Shown one piece after another: positions 215 through 45,042 of a stretch of DNA of 64,000 nt (the stretch's first letter is position 1; each line of letters begins with the position of its first letter). Below the pieces are notes generated by a model. That model was not told the origin of the DNA and made no database searches. It saw only the letters and a list, made by a program, of their open reading frames with translations. Both the position numbers and the translations under genes were made by a program. Where the stretch lies: contig CM075989.1 in assembly GCA_038087875.1 (NCBI GenBank), forward strand, positions 13,268,001-13,332,000, written 5' to 3'. Source of the DNA: Malacoraja senta. Taxonomy: Eukaryota.

Positions 215-1020
215 GATTAACTGTGTGGATGGTTGTCTGAGGCTATAGGATATCAATTTTGTACAAAATGGCAGATTAAATTTAATCCAGATGAATGTGA
301 AGTGATGCATTTTGCAAGCACTAATTAGGTTAGGACATACACCATGAATGTAGGGTCCTAGGGAGTATTGAGGAACAGAAGAACAACGGTGCACAAGTCC
401 AAAGGTCCTTGAAGGTGATGTCCAATTAGATAACTTGGTTAAAAAGGTTTATGTATATCAGTCAGGGGATTGAAAACAAGAACAGGAAGGTTATGTTCCA
501 ATTTTGTAAAATTATGGTCGAACACCAGCATGCAGTTCTACTCACAATAGGGAAACGTGATGACATGGAGAGGTGCAGAAATGCTCCATCTCAGACGGAG
601 AGATGGAGCATTTTAGTTGTGTGGAAAGTAGGAGAGGCTGGGGCTGTTTTTCCTGGAGTGGAAGAGGTTAAGATGGAACATGACAGGCATATAAAATTGA
701 GGGGTAGAGATAGGGTACCCAGCAGGAGGCTTTACCCCATAGCAGAGGTAGATAAAATTAAAGGCTCTATGTTTAGAGGGGATCTGAAGAGGACATTTTT
801 TCATCAGAGTGGATAAGTACGTGGAATGCGCTGCCAGAAATAGTGGTTGAACAGAGATAGTCGCTGACAGCATTTAAATGTTTTGATGAGCACTGAATCA
901 GTAACCTGAACCTAGAAGGCTACAGGACAAGTGCAGAAGAATTAGATTAATACAGATGGGTCAGCGTGGATGTGGTGGGTTGAATGACCTCTTTCCATGT
1001 CGTATGACTCCATGACTATG
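215..1020 (+). mobile_element. Degenerate CR1-type LINE 3' fragment
   Basis: Matches the end of RT (W-FN--KC-V-HFG) and the tail of the CR1 copy at 26003-28282; ends approximate. Confidence 0.8.
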
Positions 1021-1341
1021 ACAAATATGGGTTATTTCCAGACACTGAAGAATAGTGATCTTGGGTTGGAAAGATTGAATAGATTTGGCCTTTAGTTTCC
1101 CATGTTCAAATGAGATGATTGCACTGAAATGTTTTAAAAATTCTGACACTGCTTGACAGGGAGGATGCTTCCTTGGCTGAGAGTTTAGAATCAAAGGTCA
1201 CATTCTATGTATGATGTAGATGATTTAAGACTGTATTGAGGAGAGATTTCTTCATACAGTTGAAGCATCTTAAGAATTCTCTATCCCGGAGCGCTGTGGA
1301 ATTAAGTGATTGAGATTATTGAAAACAGATTTATAGAGCGA

Positions 1342-1478
1342 GCCTGAAGAAGGGCCCAAAATGTTTCCTCTCCGTGTTCTTCTGGGATGCTGCCATACAT
1401 GGCGAACTTCAGTAACTAAGTTACTCCTGCATTTTGTGTCTTTCCTCGATAAACCAGCATCTGCAGTTCCTTGTATCT
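1342..1478 (+). mobile_element. Short Penelope-derived element (degenerate)
   Basis: ctgaagaaggg...gatgctgcc...agttactcc...ccagcatctgcagttcc, shared with the 3' end of the element at 36501-37757. Confidence 0.7.
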
Positions 1479-2014
1479 AGTTTTATAGTGATTATTAAAA
1501 GAATGAAGGGATCTAGTAGTGAAGGAAAATGGAGCAAAGCAGCCAACAATGCTCAAATGCCTCTTTTATGTTATCAGTTAAATGTCAACTGATTTTTATG
1601 ATTATTTGCTTGTTTTTTTCTTGCACACAACTGTACATTCTACACCCAAAATTCTCAGTAATTTTCCAAATCCTTGGAACTCTTTGGAAAGGTACAATCA
1701 TAGCTATTTGCTGGTGAAAAATGCATTTGCATTGAATTTGTGCGGATTGATCTCTTCCGGGTAAATTTTCCAGAGTGTGAAAAAAGATAAGTGATCTGAA
1801 ATAAACAGAAAAGTTGTGAAAGAGAATTTGCCAGTAATTGAATTGCCTTTATGTGTTTATTATTATTTTTCAAAAAGTATCCACCATATTTCTGTAAATT
1901 CACAGATTGGGAGCAGGACATATTGTGCAGTGTTGTCACATTGCTAATTTAATGCTGAGACTTGGGAAGTATTTATCTTCTGAAGTATTTACCTTGGTTT
2001 GTTTTATTTTATAG

Positions 2015-2094
2015 TCCCAAAAATCCTGGATAGAGAATACCTTTACCAAGAGAGAATGTGTTTATATAATTCCAAGCTCAAAAGACCCACACAG
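2015..2094 (+). CDS. TRPM7: TRPM7 exon 2 (SQKSWIENTFTKRECVYIIPSSKDPH)
   Basis: ttatag|TCC ... AG|gtaaag; 80 nt. Confidence 0.96.
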
Positions 2095-2429
2095 GTAAAG
2101 GAACGTAAATTTATTTGTGATTCTGTTTTCAATGTACTTTTTTTTAAATATAGGTGATATTTTTCTTATGTATATATTGCTTACGGGACTGTGGCCAAAA
2201 CCAGTGATTTTGTGCAGATGAAGGTTCTTGGGTTAATTTTAAATATGGTTATGGAATTACACTGATTTAAGCTTCGAGGGGGCTATTGTGATTTGTTATT
2301 CTTCTTTGTATCCATTGTCAGATGTTATTCATGACCTTGTTCATCAAACTAAGGAACTTTATTATAGTGTTGCAGTTATATAGCACAAAAACAGGTCCAG
2401 CAGTTCACAATGCCCTGTGGGCCTTCTCA

Positions 2430-3718
2430 GCTCAACTAATTTCCCAACACCTATTTAAAAGCCTTCTTTGCTAAGGTGTCACTTAGTCGTGAGAGAGTAC
2501 CTGCTTCTTCAGCCTGTCAATTCTTGATTTCAACTACCTTCCAAGTGGAAAAAACGTTGACTATCCTGGATTAATCTCTTCTAAGTGTAGTGTAATCCTG
2601 TGCATCAGAATTGTTTTTCAATAATTTCCCTACTCTTGATGTTTGGCTCACGGGCCTATAATTACGTGGCTGATTCCAACTGCCCCTCTTAAATAAAAGA
2701 GGCATCTCTTCTGTGGCCAGAAAGATTTGAAAATTTTCTTTGAACTCCCAACAAATTCCTTTCTTACCTCCCATTGCAGCCTAGATATTTATCCACCTTT
2801 TAAAATATAATTTTTGACCGCATGGATACAATAAAGACTCAATGAGCAATTGGACATCTCCTGCTGTCTCCATTTCAATGGTAATTTGTTCAAAGGTTCC
2901 ACTGATCCACTCCTAGAATTCTCTCAAGCTCAAAGTTCTTCTGCATTGTGAATGGAGATGGCAAGCATTCAATTAAGTCCTTGTGCCCTCGTGAATCGTA
3001 CTCTTTCTCCAGTTACTCTCATGCTTTAATATTCTTATAAGAACACATTGGAATTTTCAAGTCTGAAGAAGGGTCTCGACCTGAAACGTTGCCTTTTCCT
3101 TCGCTCCATAGATGCTGCCTTACCCGCTGAGTTTCTCCAGCATTTTTGTCTACCTTTGATTTTTCCAGCATCTGCAGTTCCTTCTTAAACGTTGAGTTAC
3201 TCCAGCACTTTATGTCTATCTTTGGAATTTTAATTAGTCTTGTCAGTTGATGTCATTTGATTTGCTTCTGCACTCTCCTAATTATTTTAAGTACCTCCTA
3301 CACATTCCCTATCCAGTTGGGCTTTGTCGGATTTCCGTTCTCTAAAACTAACGTAAGCATTCATTTTTTTAGATCCTACCCCTTGTCACTTGACATCCAG
3401 GGTACCTTATACTTGTGCTGTTATCCTTCACCATTATGGGAACAAGTTGGCCTTGAACTCTCGTTTTCTGGATCCTCACACTGGTCATCCCTAGAGTAAA
3501 GAAAGTAGTCACTCCCAGTGCAATTGTTTACCAGGTTCTATTTTATCAACTTGAAATCAGCCTTCTCACAATTCAGGATCCTAGTTTCTGGTCTATTCTT
3601 GTTCTTCATAACAACCATAAAACTTGCTGCTACAATCACTATCTCCAAAATATTCTCCGACTGACACTCCCACCACTTGCCCACCAACACTTCCAAAGAT
3701 TCTGTGTATCCCCCTTCT
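2430..3718 (-). mobile_element. Old CR1-type LINE fragment, interrupted by younger insertions and continuing after 4617
   Basis: Minus-frame RNYRPVSQTSRVGKLL resembles CR1 RT GNYRPVSLTSVVGK; ends approximate. Confidence 0.6.
3058..3221 (+). mobile_element. Short Penelope-derived element with hammerhead-like motif
   Basis: Starts agtctgaagaagggtctcgacctgaaacgtt; flanked by ttggaatttt direct repeats (3048-3057, 3222-3231). Confidence 0.85.
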
Positions 3719-7590: not shown

Positions 7591-8114
7591 AAACGACAAA
7601 ATAATCTTAGCTTTTAACAAAGGAACAACAAAATACAACTATTTCATAGTTTGAAAGCAATATTTTCTTACCTAGAAGAATCAAAGCTGGAAAAAAACGG
7701 AAGACATGAAGGTGTATGTACACAGCTCCACTGCTTTCCAGCAATGTTTATGCATGGTGAACTTTGACCTGGGCATGCACAGTCGGAATACCGAATTCGC
7801 TTATTGTTCTTCGTGAGACACTTGGATTTTATTTATTCTTGATTGGAGTTGTGAGTTGCTTGCAATGCCAATCTTTTTGTCTACACCTAACTGCCCACAA
7901 ACCAAGTGGCTTTTTCTACTGCTTCACAGGGAATTTACAAGTCAAGTACATTGAGTCTGGAGTCATGTAGGTCACATGAGCGAAGATGACAGATTTACCC
8001 ATGAAAGTCATTAGTGAATCAGATGAGTTTTGTGACAACCAGTTTTTTTGTGGTCACCATTCCTGATGACTTTTTTTTAACATTTGACATTATCAATTTA
8101 ATTTAAAATCTACA

Positions 8115-9431
8115 TTAAAATTAGATAATTTATCACTTTTTCTTCCAATTGTGAATAACCCTTTGTTTAAGCCTTCATGGTTGGACGGGGGTTTTACACA
8201 ATGGAAGAATTATGGAATTAAAAATATGGGACAACTTTATAAGGAAGGCACCTTTCTGACATTTCAGGAGTTGCAACAGACTTATGGACTTCGAGGAAAT
8301 GATTATTTCAGATATCTTCAACTTAGAGATTATGTAAAATCGAACTCTCAAAATTTTCGAATTAGAAATTCAGAAATTCTTGATGAATGTTGGAACAAAC
8401 ATCCTAATACAGAAAAATTAATATCTTATATATATAATATCTTATTAGACAGTGACATTCCTTCGACGGAATTACACAGACAAACATGGGAAAAAGAATT
8501 AAATCAAGTAATAACGAAAGATACTTGGGAAGAAAGTTTGCAACACATACATCAGTGCTCACTAAACGCCAGACATTCTCTAATACAATTTAAAGTAATA
8601 CATAGGTTACATTATTCAAAAACAAAACTACATAAAAATTTTCAACATATCTCACCTATATGTGATAAATGTCAACATTTAGAAGCTACATTATCTCATA
8701 TGTTTGCAAACTGTATAAAAATTAAAAAATTCTGGGTAAATATTTTCAGTATAATATCTAAAGTAACCGGCACACAATTGGACCCAGATCCAAAATTAAT
8801 AATACTCGGAATATTAGAATTAAATCAAACATTTAGAACAACACAAAGAAACTTTATTGATTATAGTTTAATAACAGGAAAAAAATTAATTCTAAAATTT
8901 TGGAAAGGCCCTACGGCCCCCACAATCAAAATGTGGATTATAGAAATGACGGAGACCTTAAACGTGGAAAGAATCAGATTTTCCCTGTTGGACAAACAGG
9001 AATTATTCGTAGGAACATGGTCTCCTTTTATTGATTACTTAAAGGGTCAGAATAGTTCAGCACAGGAACCTGACTAGCACTCGGGCTAAAGAATGGATGA
9101 AATGCTATACTCTGAAATGTACGAATATATCTCGAATGAAGTTTTTTATTTCAATACATTTTTCCATTCTTCTTTAACTATTTTTCTCCTTTTTTTTTTT
9201 TTTTTCCTTTGTTTTTTTTGTTTTTTTTAATCTTCTCTTTCTTTTCTTTCTTTACTTCATCTATCTCTTTAGTTCTATCTAGTTTAAAAAAAAAAGGCAA
9301 AAGGTATTGGAGACAATGTAATAATAATTGACAATATTATCAATTTAAAAATGTTAGACTGTAATGATGTAAATAGGTTGTGTACTTATCTCCAATAATA
9401 AAAAATATTAAAAAAAAAAAAATTTAAAAAA
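8115..9431 (+). mobile_element. 5'-truncated L1-clade LINE (ORF2 C-terminus, 3'UTR, poly-A)
   Basis: Uninterrupted ORF 8151-9077 with CCHC knuckle CDKC-8x-HMFANC; AATAAA and A-tail; 15-bp TSD aatttaaaatctaca (8100-8114, 9432-9446). Confidence 0.92.
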
Positions 9432-26002: not shown

Positions 26003-28282
26003 AAAGATGGCTCAGTAAAACTATAAAGGATAGTATTCGGCTGAAGGCAAGGGCATATAAGGTAGCTAGAGATAGTGGGAGGGTAGAGGATTGGGAAGCA
26101 TTTAAAGGTCAGCAAAAAATAACTAAGAGATTAATTAAGACGGGGAAAATAGACTATGAAAGGAATTTAGCGAACAACATAAAAACTAATAGTAAGAGTT
26201 TTTATAGCTATATAAAAAGAAAAAGGGTGGCTAAGGTGAACGTTGGTCCATTGGAGGGTGAGACTGGAGAGTTGTTGGTGGGGAACATGGAAATGGCAAA
26301 GGCATTAAACGAGTATTTTGTATCAGTCTTCACCATAGAAGACACAAAAAATATTCCAACGCTGGATAAACGGGGCGGTAGGAATGGAGGAGCTAAATAC
26401 TATTAAGATCACCAAGGAGGTGGTATTAGGGAAATTAATGAGACTGAAGGAGGATAAATCCCCTGGGCCTGATGGATTACATCCAAGGGTCTTGAGGGAG
26501 ATAGCGGTGGGGATTGTGGATGCATTGGTGATAATTTTCCAAAACTCCCTGGAGGCAGGAACGGTCCCAGTGGATTGGAAAATGGCCAATGTAACACCTA
26601 TATTTAAAAAAGGAAGTAAACAGAAGGCGGGTAACTATAGACCGGTTAGTCTAACATCGGTGGTGGGTAAAATGTTAGAGACAATTATTAAAGAAACACT
26701 AACGGGGCACTTGGATAAACATGACTTCATCGGACAGAACCAGCATGGTTTTGTGAAGGGGAAGTCCTGTTTAACGAATCTGCTCGAATTCTTTGAGGAA
26801 GTAACAACCCGGGTGGATAAAGGGGAACCGGTGGATGTGGTATACTTGGACTTCCAAAAGGCTTTTGACAAGGTGCCACATAAGAGACTATTGCTAAAAA
26901 TAAAAAATTATGGGATTGGGGGTAATATATTAGCATGGGTAGAGGATTGGCTAACAAATAGGAAACAGAGAGTGGGGATAAATGGTTCATACTCGGGATG
27001 GCAACCGGTAACTAGCGGGGTTCCGCAAGGGTCGGTGCTGGGACCCCAGTTGTTCACAATTTATATAAATGATTTGGAGGAGGGAACCAAGTGTAATATA
27101 TCAAAATTTGCGGACGATACAAAAATGGGAGGAAAAGTAGGGGATGAGGAGGATAGGAAGAGTCTGCAAAAGGATATAGATAAGCTAGGTGAGTGGGCAA
27201 CAACTTGGCAGATGAAATTTAATACTAATAAATGTGAAGTCATTCACTTTGGGGAAAAAAAATGATAGGGCAAGTTATTTTCTAAATGAGGTGGAGCTGC
27301 GTTGTAATGCAACGCAAAGGGATCTAGGGGTAGTAGTACATGAATCACTAAAAGTTAGTATGCATGTGCAGCAAGCAATCAGGAAGGCCAATGGAGTTTT
27401 GGCCTTTATTGCTAGGGGGATTGAGTATAAAAACACGGAGGTCTTGCTGCAGCTGTACACAGTATTAGTGAGACCACATTTGGAATACTGTGTACAGTTC
27501 TGGGGTCCATACTTAAGAAAGGATGTACTGGCCCTGGAGGCAGTGCAGCGAAGGTTTACAAGATTAATTCCTGCAATGAGGGGATTGACATATGAGGAAA
27601 GGTTAAGTAGGCTGGAACTCTACTCTTTGGAGTTTAGAAGAATGAGAGGCGATCTCATTGAAACATATAAGATCGTGAGGGGCCTTGATCGGGTGGATGC
27701 ACCGAGGATGTTCCCAATGATCGGGGAAACTAGAACTAGGGGACATAGTTGTAGAATAAGAGGGGGCTCTTTTAAAACTGAGATGAGGAAGAACTTCTTC
27801 ACCCAGAGGGTGGTTAATTTATGGAATTCACTGCCCCAGGGAGCAGTGGAAGCAGAAACATTAAATATATTTAAATCTAAAATAGATGTTTTTTTAGCTG
27901 CCAAGGGGATAAGGGGCTACGGGGAGAGGGCAGGGATATGGACCTAGGTATGGTTAGTATAGTAAGACCTGAGTGATCTCCTGGACAAGTGTCGATCGCC
28001 TGGATTGGGGTCGGAGAGGAATTTCCCGGATTTTTTTCCCGAATTGGACCTGGGTTTTTATCCGGTTTTTTGCCTCCCCCAGGAGATCACGCGGTTCTTG
28101 GGGTGGAGAGGGGTGATAGCGATATAAAGGGGAGGGTAGTGTCTTGTGTTCTGTGTCTTGTGTCTACTGTTTGTGGGTAAGGGTGTCTGTTTAGTGTTCA
28201 GCCATGAGCGAATGGCGGTGCGGGCTCGATGGGCCTGGTGGTCTACTCTCGCACCTACTTTCTATGTTTCTATGTTTCTATG
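26003..28282 (+). mobile_element. Young 5'-truncated CR1 LINE with RT domain (two frameshifts)
   Basis: Overlapping ORFs with PGPDG, NYRPVSLTS, DFQKAFD, GVPQGSVLGP, FADD, RPHLEYC; (ttctatgt)n tail. Confidence 0.95.
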
Positions 28283-32462: not shown

Positions 32463-32684
32463 ATCTTCATGTCAGAAGCTGGAAAGATAAATCAGAAGAT
32501 CAATGTCTATTTCAGTGACTATTTCAACATCACTGACGCACTTGCTATAATTTTATTTTTTGTTGGTTTTGGACTGAGGTTTGGAAGTGGGCAAGTGAGG
32601 ATTGCTGGGAGAACAATGTATTGCCTCAATATTATATTTTGGTATGTGCGACTTCTGGATTTCCTGGCAGTCAATCAGCATGCA
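32463..32684 (+). CDS. TRPM7: TRPM7 exon 21, S3-S4, 3' end cut by the assembly gap (IFMSEAGK...LLDFLAVNQHA)
   Basis: T-tract ag|ATC; open frame runs into the N run at 32685. Confidence 0.95.
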
Positions 32685-32884
32685 NNNNNNNNNNNNNNNN
32701 NNNNNNNNNNNNNNNNNNNNNNNNNNNNNNNNNNNNNNNNNNNNNNNNNNNNNNNNNNNNNNNNNNNNNNNNNNNNNNNNNNNNNNNNNNNNNNNNNNNN
32801 NNNNNNNNNNNNNNNNNNNNNNNNNNNNNNNNNNNNNNNNNNNNNNNNNNNNNNNNNNNNNNNNNNNNNNNNNNNNNNNNNNNN
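32685..32884. other. Assembly gap (200 N)
   Basis: Run of N; left side is mid-exon 21, right side is inside an L1 RT region. Confidence 1.
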
Positions 32885-35000
32885 ATTCGACACCGTTACG
32901 AGTAACACCTTTAAAGGAAGTGGAGGACCTTAAAGAAATGGCCAGTGGTTCAATAGCCAAAGCGAAGAGAGATGGAGATAAAGGACAGCCATGACGTGTC
33001 CCATGTTCCAGTGCAAAGTATTCAGAACGAATATCAGTTGTTTGAACACTAGCTTGTGGCAATGCATACAGTAATCTTACCCAACTGATAAATTTATCTC
33101 CAAAATCAAATTTCTTCAATACCGTGAATAGGTACCCCCACTCAACCCAATCAAATGCCTTCTCAGCACCTAATGAAATTACAATCTCAGGTAAATTATC
33201 AGAATGTGTTGAATAAATAATATTTAAAAGAGTACGAATGTTGAAATATAAATGGCGTCCCTTAATAAAGCCATTCTGTTCCTCAGAAATAATACTAGAC
33301 AAAACCCTCTCTAGACGGAGAGCAATAATTTTGGCCAAAACTTTTACTTCAGCATTCAGTAAAGGCAGAGGTCTATAAGAACCACAGGAAGTGGGATCTT
33401 TATCTTTCTTTAAAAGAAGAACTATCGACGCTTGAGTCAGTGTGGGAGGTAACAAACCATTTTACAAAGATTCATTGAACATCAACAAAAGCATCAATAA
33501 ATTTCTTTAGGAACTCTATTCGAAATCCATCAGGACCTGGGGCTTTGTGAGATTGCATTGCTGTAATTGCAAAACGTAGTTCTTCAAGGGAAAGTGGAGC
33601 ATCCAATTCTTTTGCACGGTCAGAATCAATGGTAGGATTCTCAAGATTGGCCAGGAACTGATTCATTTTGGTAGTATCAGCAATGAATTCTGATTTGTAT
33701 AGGGAAGAATAAAATGATTTAAATGTGGCATTAATTTCCACAGTCTCCGTAACAGTCGTGTTAAATATATTATTAATTTGCCGTATAAGACACGAGGTGA
33801 ACTGACGTTTTAATTGGTGTGCTTGAAATCGATTTGCTTTGTCACCATGTTCATAATAAGTACCACGAGTTTGTAACAACAGTCTCTCAGCACTTCTGGT
33901 AGAAATAAGATCAAACTCCGCCTGAAGATTAAGACGCTTCTTAAATAGTTCTGGAGAAGGATCGGATGAACATTCTTGATGAGGCTATTAATAGCAGATG
34001 TAAGCTCTGTAAGCCTGGTATTGCGTTTTTTTATTAGAATAGGAGAATATGAAATAATCTGCCTTCTAAGAAAAGCTTTCAGTGACTCCCAAATTAATGA
34101 AAAAGATGTAGATTCACTCTGGTTAAAGAAGAGAAAGTCATCCATTGAGTTTGAAACAAATTCACAAAATGTTTTATCGGCCAACAATAATGAGTTAAAT
34201 CTCCAAGGGGGGGGGGGAGTAGATTTATGTATAGGTAACTGAATATCTGGAAATAATGGTGCATGATCAGATATTAGAATACTTGAATAATCTGAGTAAA
34301 CAACACATGAGTTGAGACTTATCTATAAAGAAATAATCTATTCTTGAATATGATTGATGTACCTGAGAAAAGAAAGAGAACTTTTTGGTTGAGGGGTTAC
34401 AAAGTCTCAAAGGGTCAACCAAACCACTCCGGGTCATAAAATCAGAAAAAGATTTAGACATAGCTGATTGGGATAAAGTGCAGGGACTAGAACGATCTAA
34501 CATTCGATCAAAAACACAATTCAGATCACCTCCAAAAAATAACAAATGGGTATTTAAATGAGGTATATTACTAAGTAATCTATTAGAGAATTCATCATCA
34601 TCAAAGTTAGGTGCATAGACATTTACTAACAACACATTTGCATTAATGTACCTGCAACTATTAGATATCGACAATTTTTATCAGCAATAACATAGTTGAT
34701 AAAAACTGAATTGTTTTATTAATTAAAATAGCAACCCCTCTAGCTTTAGAATTAAAATTGTAGTGGTAGACCTGACCTATCCAAGAGGACTGCAGCCAAT
34801 GATGATATTTAAGTCTAAGATGAGTCTCGTGCAAAAAAAACTATGTCAGAGTTAAGCTGTTTTAGGTGACTGGAAAGCCTGGATCTTTTAATAGGATTGC
34901 CCATACCATGTATATTCCAAGTGAGAAAACGAATAGGTGTGCGTGAGCGAAGATTGCAGGGATTCCAATTAGCAGATTTATGTGTGAAGAGAAAAAAAAG
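32885..35000 (-). mobile_element. L1-clade LINE ORF2 (APE endonuclease to RT), frameshifted, running into the gap
   Basis: Minus frames FLTWNIHG, NVYAPN, GGDLNC, YSRIDYF, KAPGPDG, SYRPLPLLN, AEKAFD, GCPLSP. Confidence 0.92.
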
Positions 35001-38412: not shown

Positions 38413-40561
38413 GTAGTGTCTTTTATAAAGAACTAAAATACCATATTTAGTTGTTTTAAAACTGAAGTTTTGATTCAGTTTGATCTTGTGCAGTTAACTG
38501 ACGTATCATAATCTGCAATTACTAATATTTTAGCAAATTTAGCTGCCATTAGGACAATTTAAAATCTCGTTACAGATCTAGCCCAGAATCGTGTCTGGGG
38601 TGGCCGTGACCCCATCTGGGCATCCCCTATTGGCCCTGTTGTCTCACAGGCCCTCTGGAATCCAGCAGTATGGTCTGAAAGATGGGACCTCAAGCTGCAT
38701 GGTGCAAAGGCAGTATCCCTGATGGCCAGCAATGCAGAGGATGAAGCTTTGCCAGATGTAACATTTTGCAATGATTTCAATAGGCTCTGAATGTCTCTGA
38801 TATTCATAGAAAATAAAAAGCTCTTAAAATTAAGCAGACAGAAGCAAAAAACAGTTGACAAAGCCAAAGTATATTTCCCAATAATTAAAAACCATGGAAA
38901 GGAAGCAAAATTTAAAATAACTTATTTTCCCCCTGGTCTCTATTCTTTTGTTTAACAGTCGCTATTGAAATAATTTATTCTTTGATCATGAACCAGGTAT
39001 GACCAGATCAACGAGATTCCTTCTTTCTGCCCTTCCACCGACTAGATCCCAGCATTGGATTGCATATAAAGTTAGGCAGTATAAATAGGGAGTCACGGAG
39101 TTTACACACACTTGGTAGACACAAAATGCTGGAGTAACTCAGCGGGACAGGCGGCATCTCTGGAGAGAAGGAATGGGTGACGTTTCGGGTCGAGTGTTCT
39201 GCATCTGCAGTTATTTCCTACACAGTTTGCACGCACTAGTTTGGGATGAGTTTCATTGCCTGAACGCCAACTGTTTCATTAGAACCACTGGCACAGGTAA
39301 GCATGAGCTGGCTGCTCATCTGATGGCACATATCATCCAGTACAATAATGCATTGTTGTTGAAATGTAGTTCGATTCAAACTACTTTAAAAGTTGTATCC
39401 AGTTGAAGTTTAACTTGCTGAAATAAATGGTATCTTCAACTACATACAATGAAACTGTTTGCTCAAAGCTATCGTAATGTCCCACCTGAAGGGTTCAAAA
39501 GTTGAAGCCCATAATTCAAAGATATTTTTGCTTCATAATTGATTTTTATTTACTACCTAAAAGTCCTATATCCTGTTTTGATGTTATGATTCCCATTTGG
39601 TGTTAATTTGTTGTACACACAGTTATAAGCAGCAGACATAATATTGAGAATTTAACTGGTATGATTTCCTGACACTGCAATTTGTGATTTTAATGTTGAG
39701 TAGCAATTTAAAAAAACAAGATGCTGGAGTTTATTTACCCTCTTAAATGGAACTAATCATCATATTTAGTAATATGGCATACACTTGTGGAATCCTACAA
39801 CAAGGAGATATTAAATTTTCCAGTTAGGTGCTGGGAACCTATCATCTTTGAGGTTCACCAGTGAATCATTTCCCCTTCTTACCATTGCTTGTTGAACCAG
39901 ATGACACATAGGTTTATACTTAAACATAATTTGAGCTATTGACCTTGTACCATAATTGACACAGACTCCAAGCTTCCTTCCTTTTCTTAAGTCACCTCTC
40001 TCTTATAGCCCATCTTGTGGATATAGCTATCCACTTGGCATACTCTCTGCCTCTATAAACCAACTCAAACCAGCAACATCTCTGCCCTTGCCATATCCTG
40101 CTCATCTACTGCTTGTGTCTTGTTGATACACTCAAGGTGAAGTTGTCAGTGTTTGAATTATTTGGTCATTGCCATCTTTATCTCTATGAAACCCCATCTT
40201 CACACTTCCCAGGCCTTCCATTGAAACGCCTTTGACGTTGTATAACTCGTTCTTTGTCCCACTATTATTTATGCATTCACTCACCTAGGTCCAAGGCTCT
40301 AGAATTCTATGCCTGAACTACCATCTATCACCACCCCCACCACACCATTTTACTGCTTTTAGACTCTTTAAATCCTCTTTGACCAAGCTTTGCCTCCACT
40401 TCTAACACCAGCCCTTTTGATTTGGTGTCCATTTATTAATCTTGCAAGATAATTTGGGGGAAATGGTGTCGCATAAATACAGTTTGTATATCCGAGACAT
40501 TTTGTGATCTTCATTTATTTAGTCTAGTGTGAAGTAATGAAGACTTCTCTTTTCTATTTAG

Positions 40562-41289
40562 AGTTGAAAATATGTCCATCCAATTGAAAGAAGTAGGTGA
40601 TCGAGTAAATTATATAAAGCGTTCATTGCAAACATTGGACAGTCAAATAGGGCACTTGCAGGACTTGTCAGCTCTTACAGTGGATACATTGAAAGCACTG
40701 ACTGCTCAAAAAGCTTCGGAGGCCACAGAGGTGCACAATGAAATTACTCGTGAGCTCAGCATTTCAAAAAATCTGGGAGAGAATGTTTCTGATGTCCCAC
40801 TTAAAACTTCGTTGAAGAAGCACAGCATTGGAAGATATTTTGGCTCTTCTTTTCCTCAGCGAGGGATTAACACTGGCAATTCTATCTGTACGGATGGTTT
40901 TCTTCAAGAATATGTTAACTCTTCCCCAAAGGAGGTGTGCAGAAAATTTGGTCAGGAATTACTTCCAGGTTCCCAACAAAATGAACAGAATTTTCAAGAG
41001 GCTGGTTCCTCCGGCTGTGCCTTATTACCAAAAGCAGCAGCGCTCTCTGAACTTAGGCATAGAAGCCATGTTGGCCTTGGGAAAACTCAGTCTTTGACCA
41101 ATGACCAGAAACCAGGACAGTCATTCCATAGCATACCAAATCTCTCCTCCCCATCTGCCAGATTTTTTGTTAGTACCCCATCTCAGCCAAGCGGTTCAAG
41201 CCAATTGGAGCTTGTGCCAGATTCGGTCGATTCAATTAAAACTGGTGTAGATGCTGACAGGAGTTCTGTTGAATTTGGGGCCTTTGTTG
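40562..41289 (+). CDS. TRPM7: TRPM7 exon 26, coiled coil and Ser/Thr-rich linker ([15 protein letters not shown]...[10 protein letters not shown]...VEFGAFV)
   Basis: tttag|A ... GTTG|gtaagt at the conserved EFGAFVG boundary; 728 nt. Confidence 0.93.
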
Positions 41290-41960
41290 GTAAGTATAGT
41301 GAAGTTGTTTGTGCTTTACCTGAAGAAATTTGCTACTGCCCTTCTCATCCTGCTTGCAGCTTCTGTTGCAGTAATCGTACTACACCTTGCTATGAGACTG
41401 AAGGATATCTTAATCATGCATTCATTGATACTGAGAGTAGCACAGACACTGATATTAATGACCGAAGCACTGAATGTAACCCAAGTGCCATGCACTACTT
41501 TGAGAACCAATTCGAAAAGAATGGACCTCTGCAAACAGGCGAGTTGACTTCAGCCACCATATCCAGTAAAGAGACCCATGAAAAATACAGAAAAGAGCAA
41601 AGAAATTTGGACGATTGCTTCATGCAGGCTATCGAATTGCAAAGTCAACATATCAATATTGGGAACTGTTCAGGACATCTGAGTGACCTGTGGAACAAAA
41701 CCCAATTTAGAGGTTTGAGCTCCTGTACCACTGTAACTTTACGGGACTTCTGCTGGTTGCAGGTGACTTCACTGTTGGTGCACTGCTTGGGACACTCCTT
41801 GGTTTTATTGTCCTTTTTCCTATATTTATGTTGCTTGAGTAAGGCACTACTGTTCCATTCTGTTTTACCCAGTTCAGTAACACTTCCACATCCTCTTAAA
41901 TGTCTCAGATTTGTACCTCAAACCCATGCTTGCTTTTAGCAATTCTGAATGTTTCCTTCC

Positions 41961-42450
41961 TTCAAAGTTTCAAAGATCAGTTTATTGTCACACGTACCAA
42001 TTAAGGTACAGTGAAACTCAAATTACCATACAGCCATACTATAAAAAAAAAGCAACAAGACACCCAACTACATAAAAGTTAACTTAAACATCCACCACAG
42101 TGGATTCCTCACTGATGGAAGGCAATAAAGTCCAATCTTCTTCCTCTTTATTCTCCCGTGGTCGGGCAATGGAACTATCTGCAGTCGGGGCGAACAAAGC
42201 TCCCGCGTCGGGCGGTCGAAGCTCCTGCGACTTGGAGCTCCCGAAGTCAGTCTCTAACCAGAGAATGCGAGCTCCACGATGGTAAGTCCTGCAGGCTCCC
42301 ATGGTTGGAGCTCCCGAAGTTGGTCTCCAGCAAGAGGCCGCCAACTCCTCGATGTTAGGCCGCAGTGCAGACGGAGATACGATACAGATAAAAATTGCAT
42401 CTCCGTCGGGGTAAGAGATTTTAAAAGGTTCCCCTCCCCCATCCCCCACC
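41961..42450 (-). mobile_element. Non-autonomous retroposon with GC-rich body and Rex/L2-like tail
   Basis: Tail shared with 20209-20351; internal ggagctcccgaagt repeats. Confidence 0.65.
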
Positions 42451-42817
42451 TGGCCCTAGATTTGACATCTGAATGGTTTCCATAAGATAGAATTGATAAG
42501 ACCTTTGCTTGGTCTTGAATTAAAAATCAATTACTTTAATTAGAAAGGGTATACGGATTGAAGCATGCAAATTTACAACATTAAATTTAAAACTAATTGT
42601 AAAAAATATTTTATATCAAAAAAGTGTTTGCTATTTTAAGTATCAATTTCCATTTACTTTGCAATCAATTGTACCTGTGGTGGTAGGGATTAGGCGTGCG
42701 AGGTCAGATCGGAAACGTTTCAAATTTGCATGTATTTTACTAACATTTTCTTTTGTATTGTCAGTTTATTAGCAACCATAAAATAAATTCTGTTCATCTA
42801 AAATGTAAATATTTCAG

Positions 42818-42912
42818 GCCACAAAGATGTATTGGAGCTGCCAAAGTTAGGAACTGGAGGAGTGCTGAAATTCAAAGACCAGAAAATAACTGTGGGAGCC
42901 ATTCATGATTTG
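42818..42912 (+). CDS. TRPM7: TRPM7 exon 27 (HKDVLELPKLG...AIHDL)
   Basis: ttcag|GC CAC AAA GAT (cf. mammalian HRD); donor TTG|gtacac is weak, but phase 0 matches exon 28. Confidence 0.75.
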
Positions 42913-43022: not shown

Positions 43023-43131
43023 GGTGCCCACCATGGTGACTATCATTTGAGGACAGTGAATTCTTATGCTGGATTTGCGGAGTTTCATGGCAGTCAGTTA
43101 ACTTCTACTGCGTCTGCTCAAGCATTCTCTT
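43023..43131 (+). CDS. TRPM7: TRPM7 exon 28 (GAHHGDYHLRTVNSYAGFAEF...AFS)
   Basis: attag|GGT ... T|gtaagt; resembles mammalian LKRVSSLAGF. Confidence 0.85.
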
Positions 43132-43427
43132 GTAAGTTATTGTTACAGATATTGTAGCAACATTTAAGAGAAAAATAAGACCTACAAAAACATGCAGGGA
43201 AGAGAAGGTATATGGGCTGTAAGCAGGCAGATCTGATTAGTTCACATTGGCATAATTTCCACGATGGGCCGATGAGCCTTTTCCTGTGCTGTACTATTAT
43301 GTTCCAAGTCCCAGTTGGTTAGACTTTACAACATTTGTTTTTCTTCATATCCCCTCTAAACGTCTTACTTGCTTTGAACTTAGGCCTTCTGGTCTTAGAT
43401 ACCCGTGCCATGGGGAATAGTTTCATA

Positions 43428-45042
43428 AGTGCCCTCCATAATGTTTGGGACAAAGACCCATCATTTATTTGCCTCTGTACTCCACAATTTGACATTTGTA
43501 CTAGAAAAAATCACGTGGTTAAAGTGCACGTTGTCAGATTTAAAGGCCATATTTATACATTTTGGTTTCACCATGTAGAAATGACAGCAGTGTTTATACA
43601 TAGTCACCCCATTTCAGGGCACCATAATGTTTGGGACACAGCAATGTCGTAAATGAAAGTAGTCATGTTTAGTATTTTGTTGCATATTCTTTGCATGCAA
43701 TGACTGCTTGAAGTCTGCGATTCATGGACATCACCAGTTGCTGGGTATCTTCTCTGGTGATGCTCTGCCAGGCCTGTATTGCAGCAATCTTTAGCTTATG
43801 CTTGCTTTGGGGGCTAGTCTCCTTCAGTGTTCCCTTCAGCATATAAAAGGCATGCTCAATTGGGTTCTGATTGGGCGATTGACTTGGCCACTCAAGAATG
43901 GACCATTTTTTAGCTCCTTTGTTGCTTCAGCAGTATGTTTTGGATCATTGTCTTGCTGTAGAATGAACCGCCAGTCAATGAGTTTTGAGGCATTTGTTTG
44001 AACTTGAGCAGATAGGATGTGTCTATACACTTCAGAATTCATTATTCTACTATCATCAGCAGTTGTATCATCAATGAAGATAAGTGAGCCAGTACCTTCA
44101 GCAGCCATACAGGCTCATGCCATAACACCCCCACCACCGTGTTTCACAGATGAGGTGGTATGCTTTGGATCTTGGGCAGTTCCTTCTCTCTTCCATACTT
44201 TGCTCTTGCCATCCCTCCGATATAAGTTAATCTTCGTCTCATCTGTCCAAAAGACCTTTTTCCAGAACTGTGGTTGCTCTTTTAAGTACTTCTTGGCAAA
44301 CTGTAACCTGGCCATCCTATTTTTGCGGATAACCAGTGGTTTGCATCTTGCAGTGTAGCCTCTGTATTTCTGTTCATAATGTCTTCTGCGGACAATGGTC
44401 ATTGACAAATCCACACCTGACTCCTGAAGAGTGTTTCTGATCTGTCGGACAGGTGTTTGGGGATTTTTCTTTATTATAGAGAGAATTCTTCTGTCATCAG
44501 CTGTGGAGGTCTTCCTTGGTCTGCCAGTCCTTTTGTGATTAGTAAGCTCTTTCTTCTTAATGATGTTCCAAACATTTTGGTAAGCCTAAGGTTTGGCTGA
44601 TGTCTCCAGTAAGTTTTATTCTTGTTTCTCAGTCTCATAATGGCTTCTTGGACTTTCATTGGCAGAACTTTGGTCCTCATGTTGATAAACAGCAATAAAA
44701 GTTTCCAAAGGTGATGGAAAGACTGGAGGAAAGATTAGGTGCTGAGAGCTTTCTTATACCTGCATTAAGGAGGCAATTAAACACACCTGAGCAATTACAA
44801 ACACCTGTGAAGCCATATGTCCCAAACATTATGGTGCCCTGAAATAGGGGGACTATGCATAAATACTGCTGAATGGTGAAATGGTGAAACCAAAATGTAT
44901 AACAAATACCCTTCAATAAAATCTGACAATGTGCACTTTAACCACATGTGATTTTTTTTTCTATTACAAATCTCAAATTCTGCAGTACAGAGGTAAATAA
45001 ATAAATGATAGGTCTTTGTCCCAAACATTACGGAGGGCACTG
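43428..45042 (-). mobile_element. Tc1 transposon (IR/DR type), near full length, transposase disrupted
   Basis: ~210-bp TIRs starting cagtgccctcc with inner ccataatgtttgggaca repeats; TA flanks; minus frames WTDETKINL, VKHGGGGVM, FILQQDNDPKHT. Confidence 0.93.

Follow-up and report, generated by a model that had tools for sequence, protein, structure and literature searches.

TRPM7 is an essential channel for Mg2+, Zn2+ and Ca2+ fused to a kinase, and the coupling of these two halves is debated. The channel and the kinase are separable by caspase cleavage (M7CK fragments). In canonical human and mouse TRPM7 the joint reads ..EFGAFVG/HRDSMDLQRF.. (the slash marks a splice border, here and below); the window, i.e. 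the 64,000-nucleotide stretch of DNA analysed here, contains this gene too, its proximal donor and its phase-1 joint being unchanged. Compared with this canonical form, the shark, tetrapod-like and fish loci have 89-215 more codons and a second donor, whereas mammalian loci are devoid of an open extension.

The linker of human TRPM6, which is constitutive, presumably contains GGGYVNWAFSEGDE and then ..KKKKNTQGL..; both resemble blocks of the extension described below, GY[VIL]N..F..DE and ..K..[RQ]GL. TRPM6, the paralogue of TRPM7, has a longer channel-kinase linker of which this segment would be a constitutive part, whereas in TRPM7 of the window the segment stands behind a strong upstream donor. 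This likeness is a lead: the extension might be ancestral TRPM6/7 exon sequence, the proximal TRPM7 donor being added later. A search for TRPM6 with a mixed alignment (one full ORF and extension-only rows) had only TRPM7 among the matches listed, the exon part of the alignment still contributing to the score, and no chain of TRPM6 exists in the PDB. Besides, no paper was found to contain the motif strings of the extension, nor do they occur in the supplementary files of the 2026 study of TRPM evolution (PMC13143021), a study that leaves splicing aside.

Regulated alternative 5' splice-site extensions offer another comparison. Like them, the locus has two in-phase donors, the weak one downstream, and a conserved adjacent intron; it also displays the same raised dN/dS and lowered dS with respect to the constitutive exon part. 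Such a combination of raised dN/dS and lowered dS is a documented signature of alternatively spliced coding sequence. The difference from this class is that here we infer the use of the distal site from sequence comparison. Truncated forms are also found among TRPM channels, for example TRPM2 variants such as TRPM2-S, cited in PMC10576435. Read-through transcripts of our locus would likewise give a channel without kinase. TRPM7 cleavage, however, works at the protein level and TRPM2-S involves other exons, and here the kinase-less product is only possible, its tail being non-conserved.

Such a TRPM7 isoform is described neither in the reviews PMC10576435 and PMC12799467, nor in PMC13143021, nor in the papers retrieved by targeted literature searches. 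We take the feature to be a probable splice form of a familiar gene; it stands out because it is old, because mammals have lost it and because it lies in the linker between channel and kinase. The best explanation of the data presented below, to which we give a probability of about 0.7, is that exon 26 carries a second 5' splice site of ancient origin, the use of which yields a TRPM7 with a long linker.

TRPM7 exon 26 and its open frame

The gene in the window is TRPM7, since its exon 26 aligns to the mouse and rat TRPM7 chains of the PDB (E 1e-35); the Pfam search with the exon 26 translation also matches PF16519, the TRPM tetramerisation coiled coil (E 7.8e-19). The short form of exon 26 (40563-41289; this exon, like all exons and splice sites below, is on the + strand) encodes the coiled coil and the start of the S/T-rich linker, and ends with ..VEFGAFVG; the RNA contigs end or branch at 41289/41290. 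There the proximal, canonical 5' splice site G/GTAAGTAT occupies 41290-41297, in phase 1, and GTAAGT directly follows exon 26 in all ten loci examined. Exon 27 (42818-42912), starting with (G)HKDVLELPKL.., has a phase-1 acceptor and is delimited by the joints 41289>42818 and 42912>43023; exon 28 (43023-43131), with a phase-0 acceptor, is supported by the second of these joints and by contig pieces 43022-43131 in the three RNA runs X1, X7 and X11.

Past the donor (GTTG/GTAAGT) the frame of exon 26 continues for 215 stop-free codons, up to the TAG at 41937-41939, exactly as the first-pass annotation of this DNA had read it. The improbability of such a frame in an intron, also claimed there, is borne out: the stop-free run to which it belongs (40533-41939, 468 codons) comes top of the 7067 runs counted in the six frames of the whole window, whose mean is 17 codons, and a run of 215 codons without a stop has a probability of 3-5e-6, about 3e-6 on the local base composition. 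We likewise found the reported turn of the DNA to T-rich within the open frame, the sense strand being A-rich until about 41675 and T-rich beyond, and the positions given for AG/GTTTGA (after 41712), CAG/GTGACT (after 41762) and AATAAA (42124-42129) are all correct. Further long stop-free runs, of 243-329 codons, are present away from exon 26 (8088-9077, 26339-27947 (+) and 32553-33461 (-)) and are probably transposon ORFs; the window also has a gap of 200 N at 32685-32884.

It had further been claimed that the whole 215-codon frame is meaningful, which does not hold for codons 142-215. When the window is compared with the sister species (locus L001), frameshifts occur only after 41763: the T-rich, non-conserved tail of the open frame (41763-41939, + strand, ending with the TAG) differs by 4/177 substitutions, and L001 lacks 4 nt (41823-26) and has 1 nt more (after 41897), two changes which break the frame. 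In 89 other ORFs the tail beyond the distal site measures 1-109 codons, with a median of 26, as one expects of non-coding sequence. The last 75 codons of the window had a ~1% chance to be free of stops, and its tail is among the longest of this distribution. The frameshifts in L001 and the random-like tail lengths elsewhere thus indicate that the last 75 codons are unselected; on the sequence comparison, the open frame at 41713-41939 would be plain intron, stop-free by chance.

Spread of the 141-codon extension and its constraint

The first part of the frame past the donor, 423 nt or 141 codons (41290-41712, + strand), is a conserved alternative coding extension, predicted to be disordered and Cys-rich at its start. 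We searched with the whole 455-residue ORF, i.e. exon part plus extension, and 146 proteins were returned, mostly ORFs on genomic contigs of public runs; the clade labels used here for these Logan-contig ORFs rest on similarity to few named sequences. About 90 genomic-contig ORFs from other vertebrates also read through FGAFVG/GTAAGT, and continue for 89-215 further codons (median 161), to [RQK]GL. They comprise a close shark relative (P0001), tetrapod-like ORFs (P0002-P0011 and P0015) whose exon part is like mammalian/bird-type TRPM7, and teleosts with other ray-finned fishes (P0032-P0130), among which Caranx, Xenoophorus, Dissostichus and Tachysurus are named. Mammal-type ORFs, those matching mouse TRPM7 and that of the giant panda (P0016), behave differently: they reach a stop 4-63 codons past the donor, in AT-rich sequence without the motifs. 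The best reading of this distribution is that the segment is at least as old as the split between sharks and bony vertebrates, and that it was lost in mammals. Two frog-like ORFs, P0122 and P0123, similar to that of Ranitomeya (P0112), also close their frame 7-27 codons past FGAFVG, without motifs. Frogs may thus have lost the extension besides mammals, or these contigs, which are short, could simply end there.

Three blocks are shared in the alignments A1, A2 and A4. C.YP.VV is next to the proximal donor. GY[VIL]N..F..[DE]E, an 11-residue short linear motif (41403-41435, + strand), has its N and F invariant, and its G, Y and E nearly so. The basic end, L..L[WR].[KR]..[RQK]GL, keeps its G and L invariant. 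Homology does not depend on close relatives: in a leave-clade-out test the tetrapod-like profile scored the window extension at 58 bits, the best of 500 shuffles reaching 6.7, and the teleost profile scored it at 16.4 bits, against 5.8 for the best shuffle. From A4, AF2 produces a disordered model (mean pLDDT 51.6, pTM 0.14), whose sole local pLDDT peak is at the GYLNHAF motif, with a block mean of 69. The insert is thus best described as a disordered linker bearing short linear motifs and no domain. Pfam has no family for the window extension or for 41 orthologous segments, and a search of the ESM Atlas with the extension gave noise only and no useful neighbour.

A single-sequence search of the 216-aa extension against 1.84 billion representative proteins gave 0 matches. 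Taking this null result as a sign of non-conservation is however precluded by the orthologous ORFs that the whole-ORF search recovered; the single-sequence search was blank because the orthologous extensions are too diverged at that database size. An ORF derived from a transposable element or from the antisense strand was also considered, and ruled out: none of the minus-strand ORFs is long, and in all species the segment is found as a homologue at the syntenic place within TRPM7.

Three deposited gene models contain the extension segment, those of Caranx melampygus (INR49_020224, P0072), Tachysurus ichikawai ('TRPM7 isoform X1', P0126, L011 256-3531) and Xenoophorus captivus (XENOCAPTIV_010835, P0063). 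They terminate in it or shortly beyond, or else leave it midway by a splice that leads directly to a late exon. These models are genomic predictions of the submitters, not cDNAs, and look like prediction artefacts due to the long open frame.

Between the window and L001, the extension (41290-41712) differs by 3/423 substitutions (0.7%), all three non-synonymous, and by one in-frame insertion of ATA, to be compared with 71/1213 substitutions (5.9%) in intron 25 and 9/727 in exon 26. This ATA, inserted at 41451/41452 in L001 and in all three related-species runs, is the only indel between window and L001 within the extension; it adds one Asn to a D/N/T-rich stretch. We calculated dN/dS by the Nei-Gojobori method in extension and exon 26 for six pairs of loci. 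For the extension it is below 1 in every informative pair: 0.46 for L002/L003, 0.70 for L002/L004, 0.52 for L005/L006, 0.56 for L004/L006 and 0.22 for L007/L008; for exon 26 it ranges across pairs from 0.07 to 0.23. Besides, in 5/6 pairs the extension has a lower dS than exon 26. The dN/dS values of 0.5-0.7 indicate moderate constraint only. The maintenance of the frame is the stronger argument for selection: the identity of the extension between clades is just 20-35%, with many indels, and every one of these is in frame. Altogether, these comparisons argue that purifying selection acts on the first 141 codons (41290-41712) in sharks as well as in tetrapod-like species and ray-finned fishes.

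The distal donor and its intronic flank

The extension ends at a weak 5' splice site, AG/GTTTGA (41713-41718, + strand), in phase 1 and in frame with exon 27. The motif [AG]AG/GTTTG[AG] is found in 10/10 loci (window, L001-L008 and L010), synonymous positions included, and in all of them the site splits its G codon in phase 1, as the proximal donor does. Exon 27 lies 0.6-1.7 kb downstream in the same contigs, with a phase-1 acceptor in seven loci (window, L002-L006 and L008), and orthologous HRD or HKD exons were recognised downstream in L002-L006 and L008. As the phases of 41712 and 42818 match, a splice between them would keep the frame and add 141 residues. The extended linker through the donor after 41712, as proposed in the first-pass annotation, thus receives comparative support from the homologous open codons, the invariant AG/GTTTGA and the phase of exon 27. 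With T at +3 and +4, GTTTGA fits the donor consensus poorly: the distal site scores about 0 bits versus 5-7 bits for the proximal one, on a hand-entered consensus matrix.

The start of the intron behind this poor donor is highly conserved. We measured the identity by segment among five tetrapod-like loci. The 60 nt past the distal donor reach 0.89, the top value of the locus, above exon 26 (0.81), exon 27 (0.80) and the successive thirds of the extension (0.79, 0.64 and 0.69); the remaining intron is at 0.49-0.58, and intron 25 at 0.37. This flank (41713-41772, + strand) includes the donor-like TGGTTGCAG/GTGAC (41754-41767), a region where 15 nt are identical between the window and L002. This conserved RNA element probably governs which donor is chosen.

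The site CAG/GTGAC itself is 50 nt from the distal donor in the window, L002, L003 and L006, 49 nt in L004, 51 nt in L005 and 40 nt in L010; L007 and L008, which are teleost loci, do not have it. It had been claimed that CAG/GTGACT (41762) joins exon 28 in phase 0 if exon 27 is skipped. Its nucleotides are indeed conserved, but a spacing of 40, 49, 50 or 51 nt according to the species means that no in-frame junction to exon 28 is conserved, and this claim has to be abandoned. TGGTTGCAG/GTGAC is rather a nucleotide element, which could bind U1 and so enhance the weak donor, or could itself serve as an alternative donor that shifts the frame in most cases.

We noted that the exonic CTGTGG.CCA (41690-41700, L-W codons) is able to pair with the intronic TGGTTGCAG (41753-41762) over 9 bp, which would loop out the weak donor; the pairing positions are columns 34-43 with 101-109 of alignment A3. 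As an RNA stem around the distal donor this pairing (RNAalifold, 9 bp, -1.9 kcal/mol) is unsupported: the positions are nearly invariant and display no covariation.

The working of the locus is then most likely as follows. The strong proximal donor (G/GTAAGT after 41289) would give the familiar short linker, and the weak distal donor (AG/GTTTGA after 41712) would keep 423 more bases in the mRNA. This would insert 141 disordered, Cys-rich residues bearing short linear motifs between the coiled coil and exon 27, the kinase staying in frame, and the conserved 60-nt flank would help or gate the weak distal donor. The open frame with its homology and constraint, the phases, the invariant donor, the conserved flank and the RNA crossing the proximal donor are observations; from them we infer that splicing from the distal donor to exon 27 really takes place, and that the insert has a function. 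Which function is a matter of speculation: GY.N..F..DE could be a phosphotyrosine docking site of the pYxN type, an export signal or an acylation signal, and roles of the insert in docking, export or S-acylation are equally speculative.

An insert of 90-215 residues in the coupling linker would be a natural handle on channel-kinase coupling; if it exists, partners or trafficking signals proper to one isoform (GY.N..F..DE, the Cys cluster) should be found in zebrafish, chicken and shark models. It also bears on the division of ancestral functions between TRPM6 and TRPM7. More tentatively, and we would rather doubt it than assert it, non-mammalian vertebrates might make a second, long-linker TRPM7, containing an ancestral TRPM6/7 segment with the Cys cluster and GY.N..F..DE, through a 60-nt element that activates the weak donor, and mammals might have lost this form. 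If true, the textbook mammalian TRPM7 would be a reduced form, and part of the role of TRPM6 in mammals would be fulfilled elsewhere by a splice form of TRPM7. On a more practical side, some deposited fish gene models end in the extension segment or mis-splice it, and the locus illustrates neatly how a very weak donor can be followed by a strongly conserved stretch of intron.

RNA across the proximal donor and competing explanations

X1, X7 and X11 are contig-based runs of related species, and they are RNA since they contain the canonical joints 41289>42818 and 42912>43023. In X1, contigs cover 41261-41706 at a depth of 4.45 and 41699-41983 at 2.47, with exon 26 at 8.13, the spliced contig at 14.2 and other intron sequence at about 0. 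The X11 contig, limited to the extension (41317-41565), has a depth of 4.49, with exon 26 at 7.91, the spliced form on the same contig and, again, other intron sequence at about 0. X7 is deeper: one contig spans 41261-42022 at 19.3, exon 26 being at 69.3, the spliced contig at 79 and other intron sequence at 9-13. The extension contigs of X1 and X7 begin 29 nt within exon 26 and hence cross the proximal donor. By contig depth, the extension amounts to 25-57% of exon 26 in the three runs.

Retention of the whole intron is ruled out by the uneven cover: in X1 and X11 the depth is 4.45-4.49 over the extension and 0 at 42532-42705, the 3' part of the intron, and intron 25 is also at about 0. All the spliced RNA-derived ORFs recovered from several species read FGAFVG/HRD.. 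or HKD.., which indicates that the proximal donor is the main donor everywhere. The first-pass annotation had suggested to look for coverage past 41289 and for the junctions 41712>42818 and 41762>43023. The coverage is there in X1, X7 and X11; as to the junctions, no joint from 41712 or 41762 is among those listed for these runs, whose contigs drop rare branches. A search for spliced long-form ORFs with the Caranx extension similarly gave only genomic-type ORFs of 419-496 aa and one gene model, in a search limited by ORF length and by contigs that break at splice branches. Neither this result nor the proximal joint of the spliced ORFs weighs much against the distal site, given such breaks in the assembly graphs. 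The raw reads of X24 (poly(A) RNA, organism F) contained no TRPM7 reads in the 6% sampled, repeat reads only.

The contigs of X1 and X7 do not end at 41712 or 41762 but go on until about 41983-42022, which means that some of this RNA, at least, is unspliced at both sites. This makes a truncated transcript possible in this species, since some RNA runs past both sites into a repeat bearing the AATAAA. One may then suppose that the proximal donor is skipped, that polyadenylation occurs in intron 26, and that the 141 codons with the run-on to the chance stop form the C-terminus of a kinase-less TRPM7. That 42532-42705 is uncovered in X1 and X11 suits this proposal, as the RNAs stop or splice earlier; so do the read-through contigs of X1 (2.47) and X7 (19.3) and the models of Caranx (P0072), Tachysurus (P0126) and Xenoophorus (P0063), which end in the extension or just past it, though these are predictions from genomes and not cDNAs. 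The AATAAA at 42124, proposed earlier as a possible end of a kinase-less transcript, is present, and RNA does pass the donors; on the other hand the signal belongs to a lineage-specific multi-copy repeat of intron 26 (41950-42450), and no conserved feature speaks for a truncated product. The ends of the read-through RNA in X1 and X7 (about 41983-42022) also fall in this repeat, where depth is unreadable, the word depth of the X7 contig rising there to 350-3286 versus 19 alongside. Our comparison of sequences found neither a conserved poly(A) signal nor a conserved C-terminal tail for a kinase-less form, the tail being frameshifted between sister species and of random length elsewhere. Polyadenylation in the intron also leaves unexplained that the frame stays open precisely as far as an invariant GT, whose phase is that of exon 27, and that the next 60 nt are conserved as nucleotides whatever the frame. 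We consider this explanation unlikely.

Two other explanations appear weaker still. The site really used might be CAG/GTGACT (41762), joined to exon 27 in a mostly frame-shifting manner and giving an mRNA targeted to NMD, which would tune the dosage of TRPM7; the 141 codons would then be conserved for reasons operating at the RNA level. The near identity of TGGTTGCAG/GTGAC from shark to tetrapod-like species regardless of frame, its being closer to the donor consensus than GTTTGA and the reduced dS of the extension would all agree with this. RNA constraint cannot, however, account for 89-215 open codons with in-frame indels, nor for protein motifs that persist as the nucleotides diverge; L007 and L008, of teleosts, have an open extension yet not the site, and no such joint is among those listed. 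This makes it quite improbable. Even less credible is a relic, an unused remnant of a once-longer exon 26, the RNA being slowly spliced pre-mRNA and the frame being open because sharks evolve slowly. The missing distal junction among the joints listed, the mere three substitutions between window and L001, all non-synonymous, and the loss of the segment in mammals, seemingly shared by the two frog-like ORFs, go in this direction; but neutral decay would have closed the frame repeatedly, whereas about 90 ORFs are open despite 20-35% identity and in-frame indels. In addition dN/dS is below 1 in all informative pairs, and the cover in X1 and X11 is limited to the extension and does not concern the whole intron.

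As for the repeats, X24 reads fall on the one at 41950-42450 with only 90-95% likeness and then diverge, and the contig of the sister species (L001) ends inside it. A second multi-copy repeat lies at 43400-44600, in intron 28, with word depths in the thousands in the RNA-type runs.
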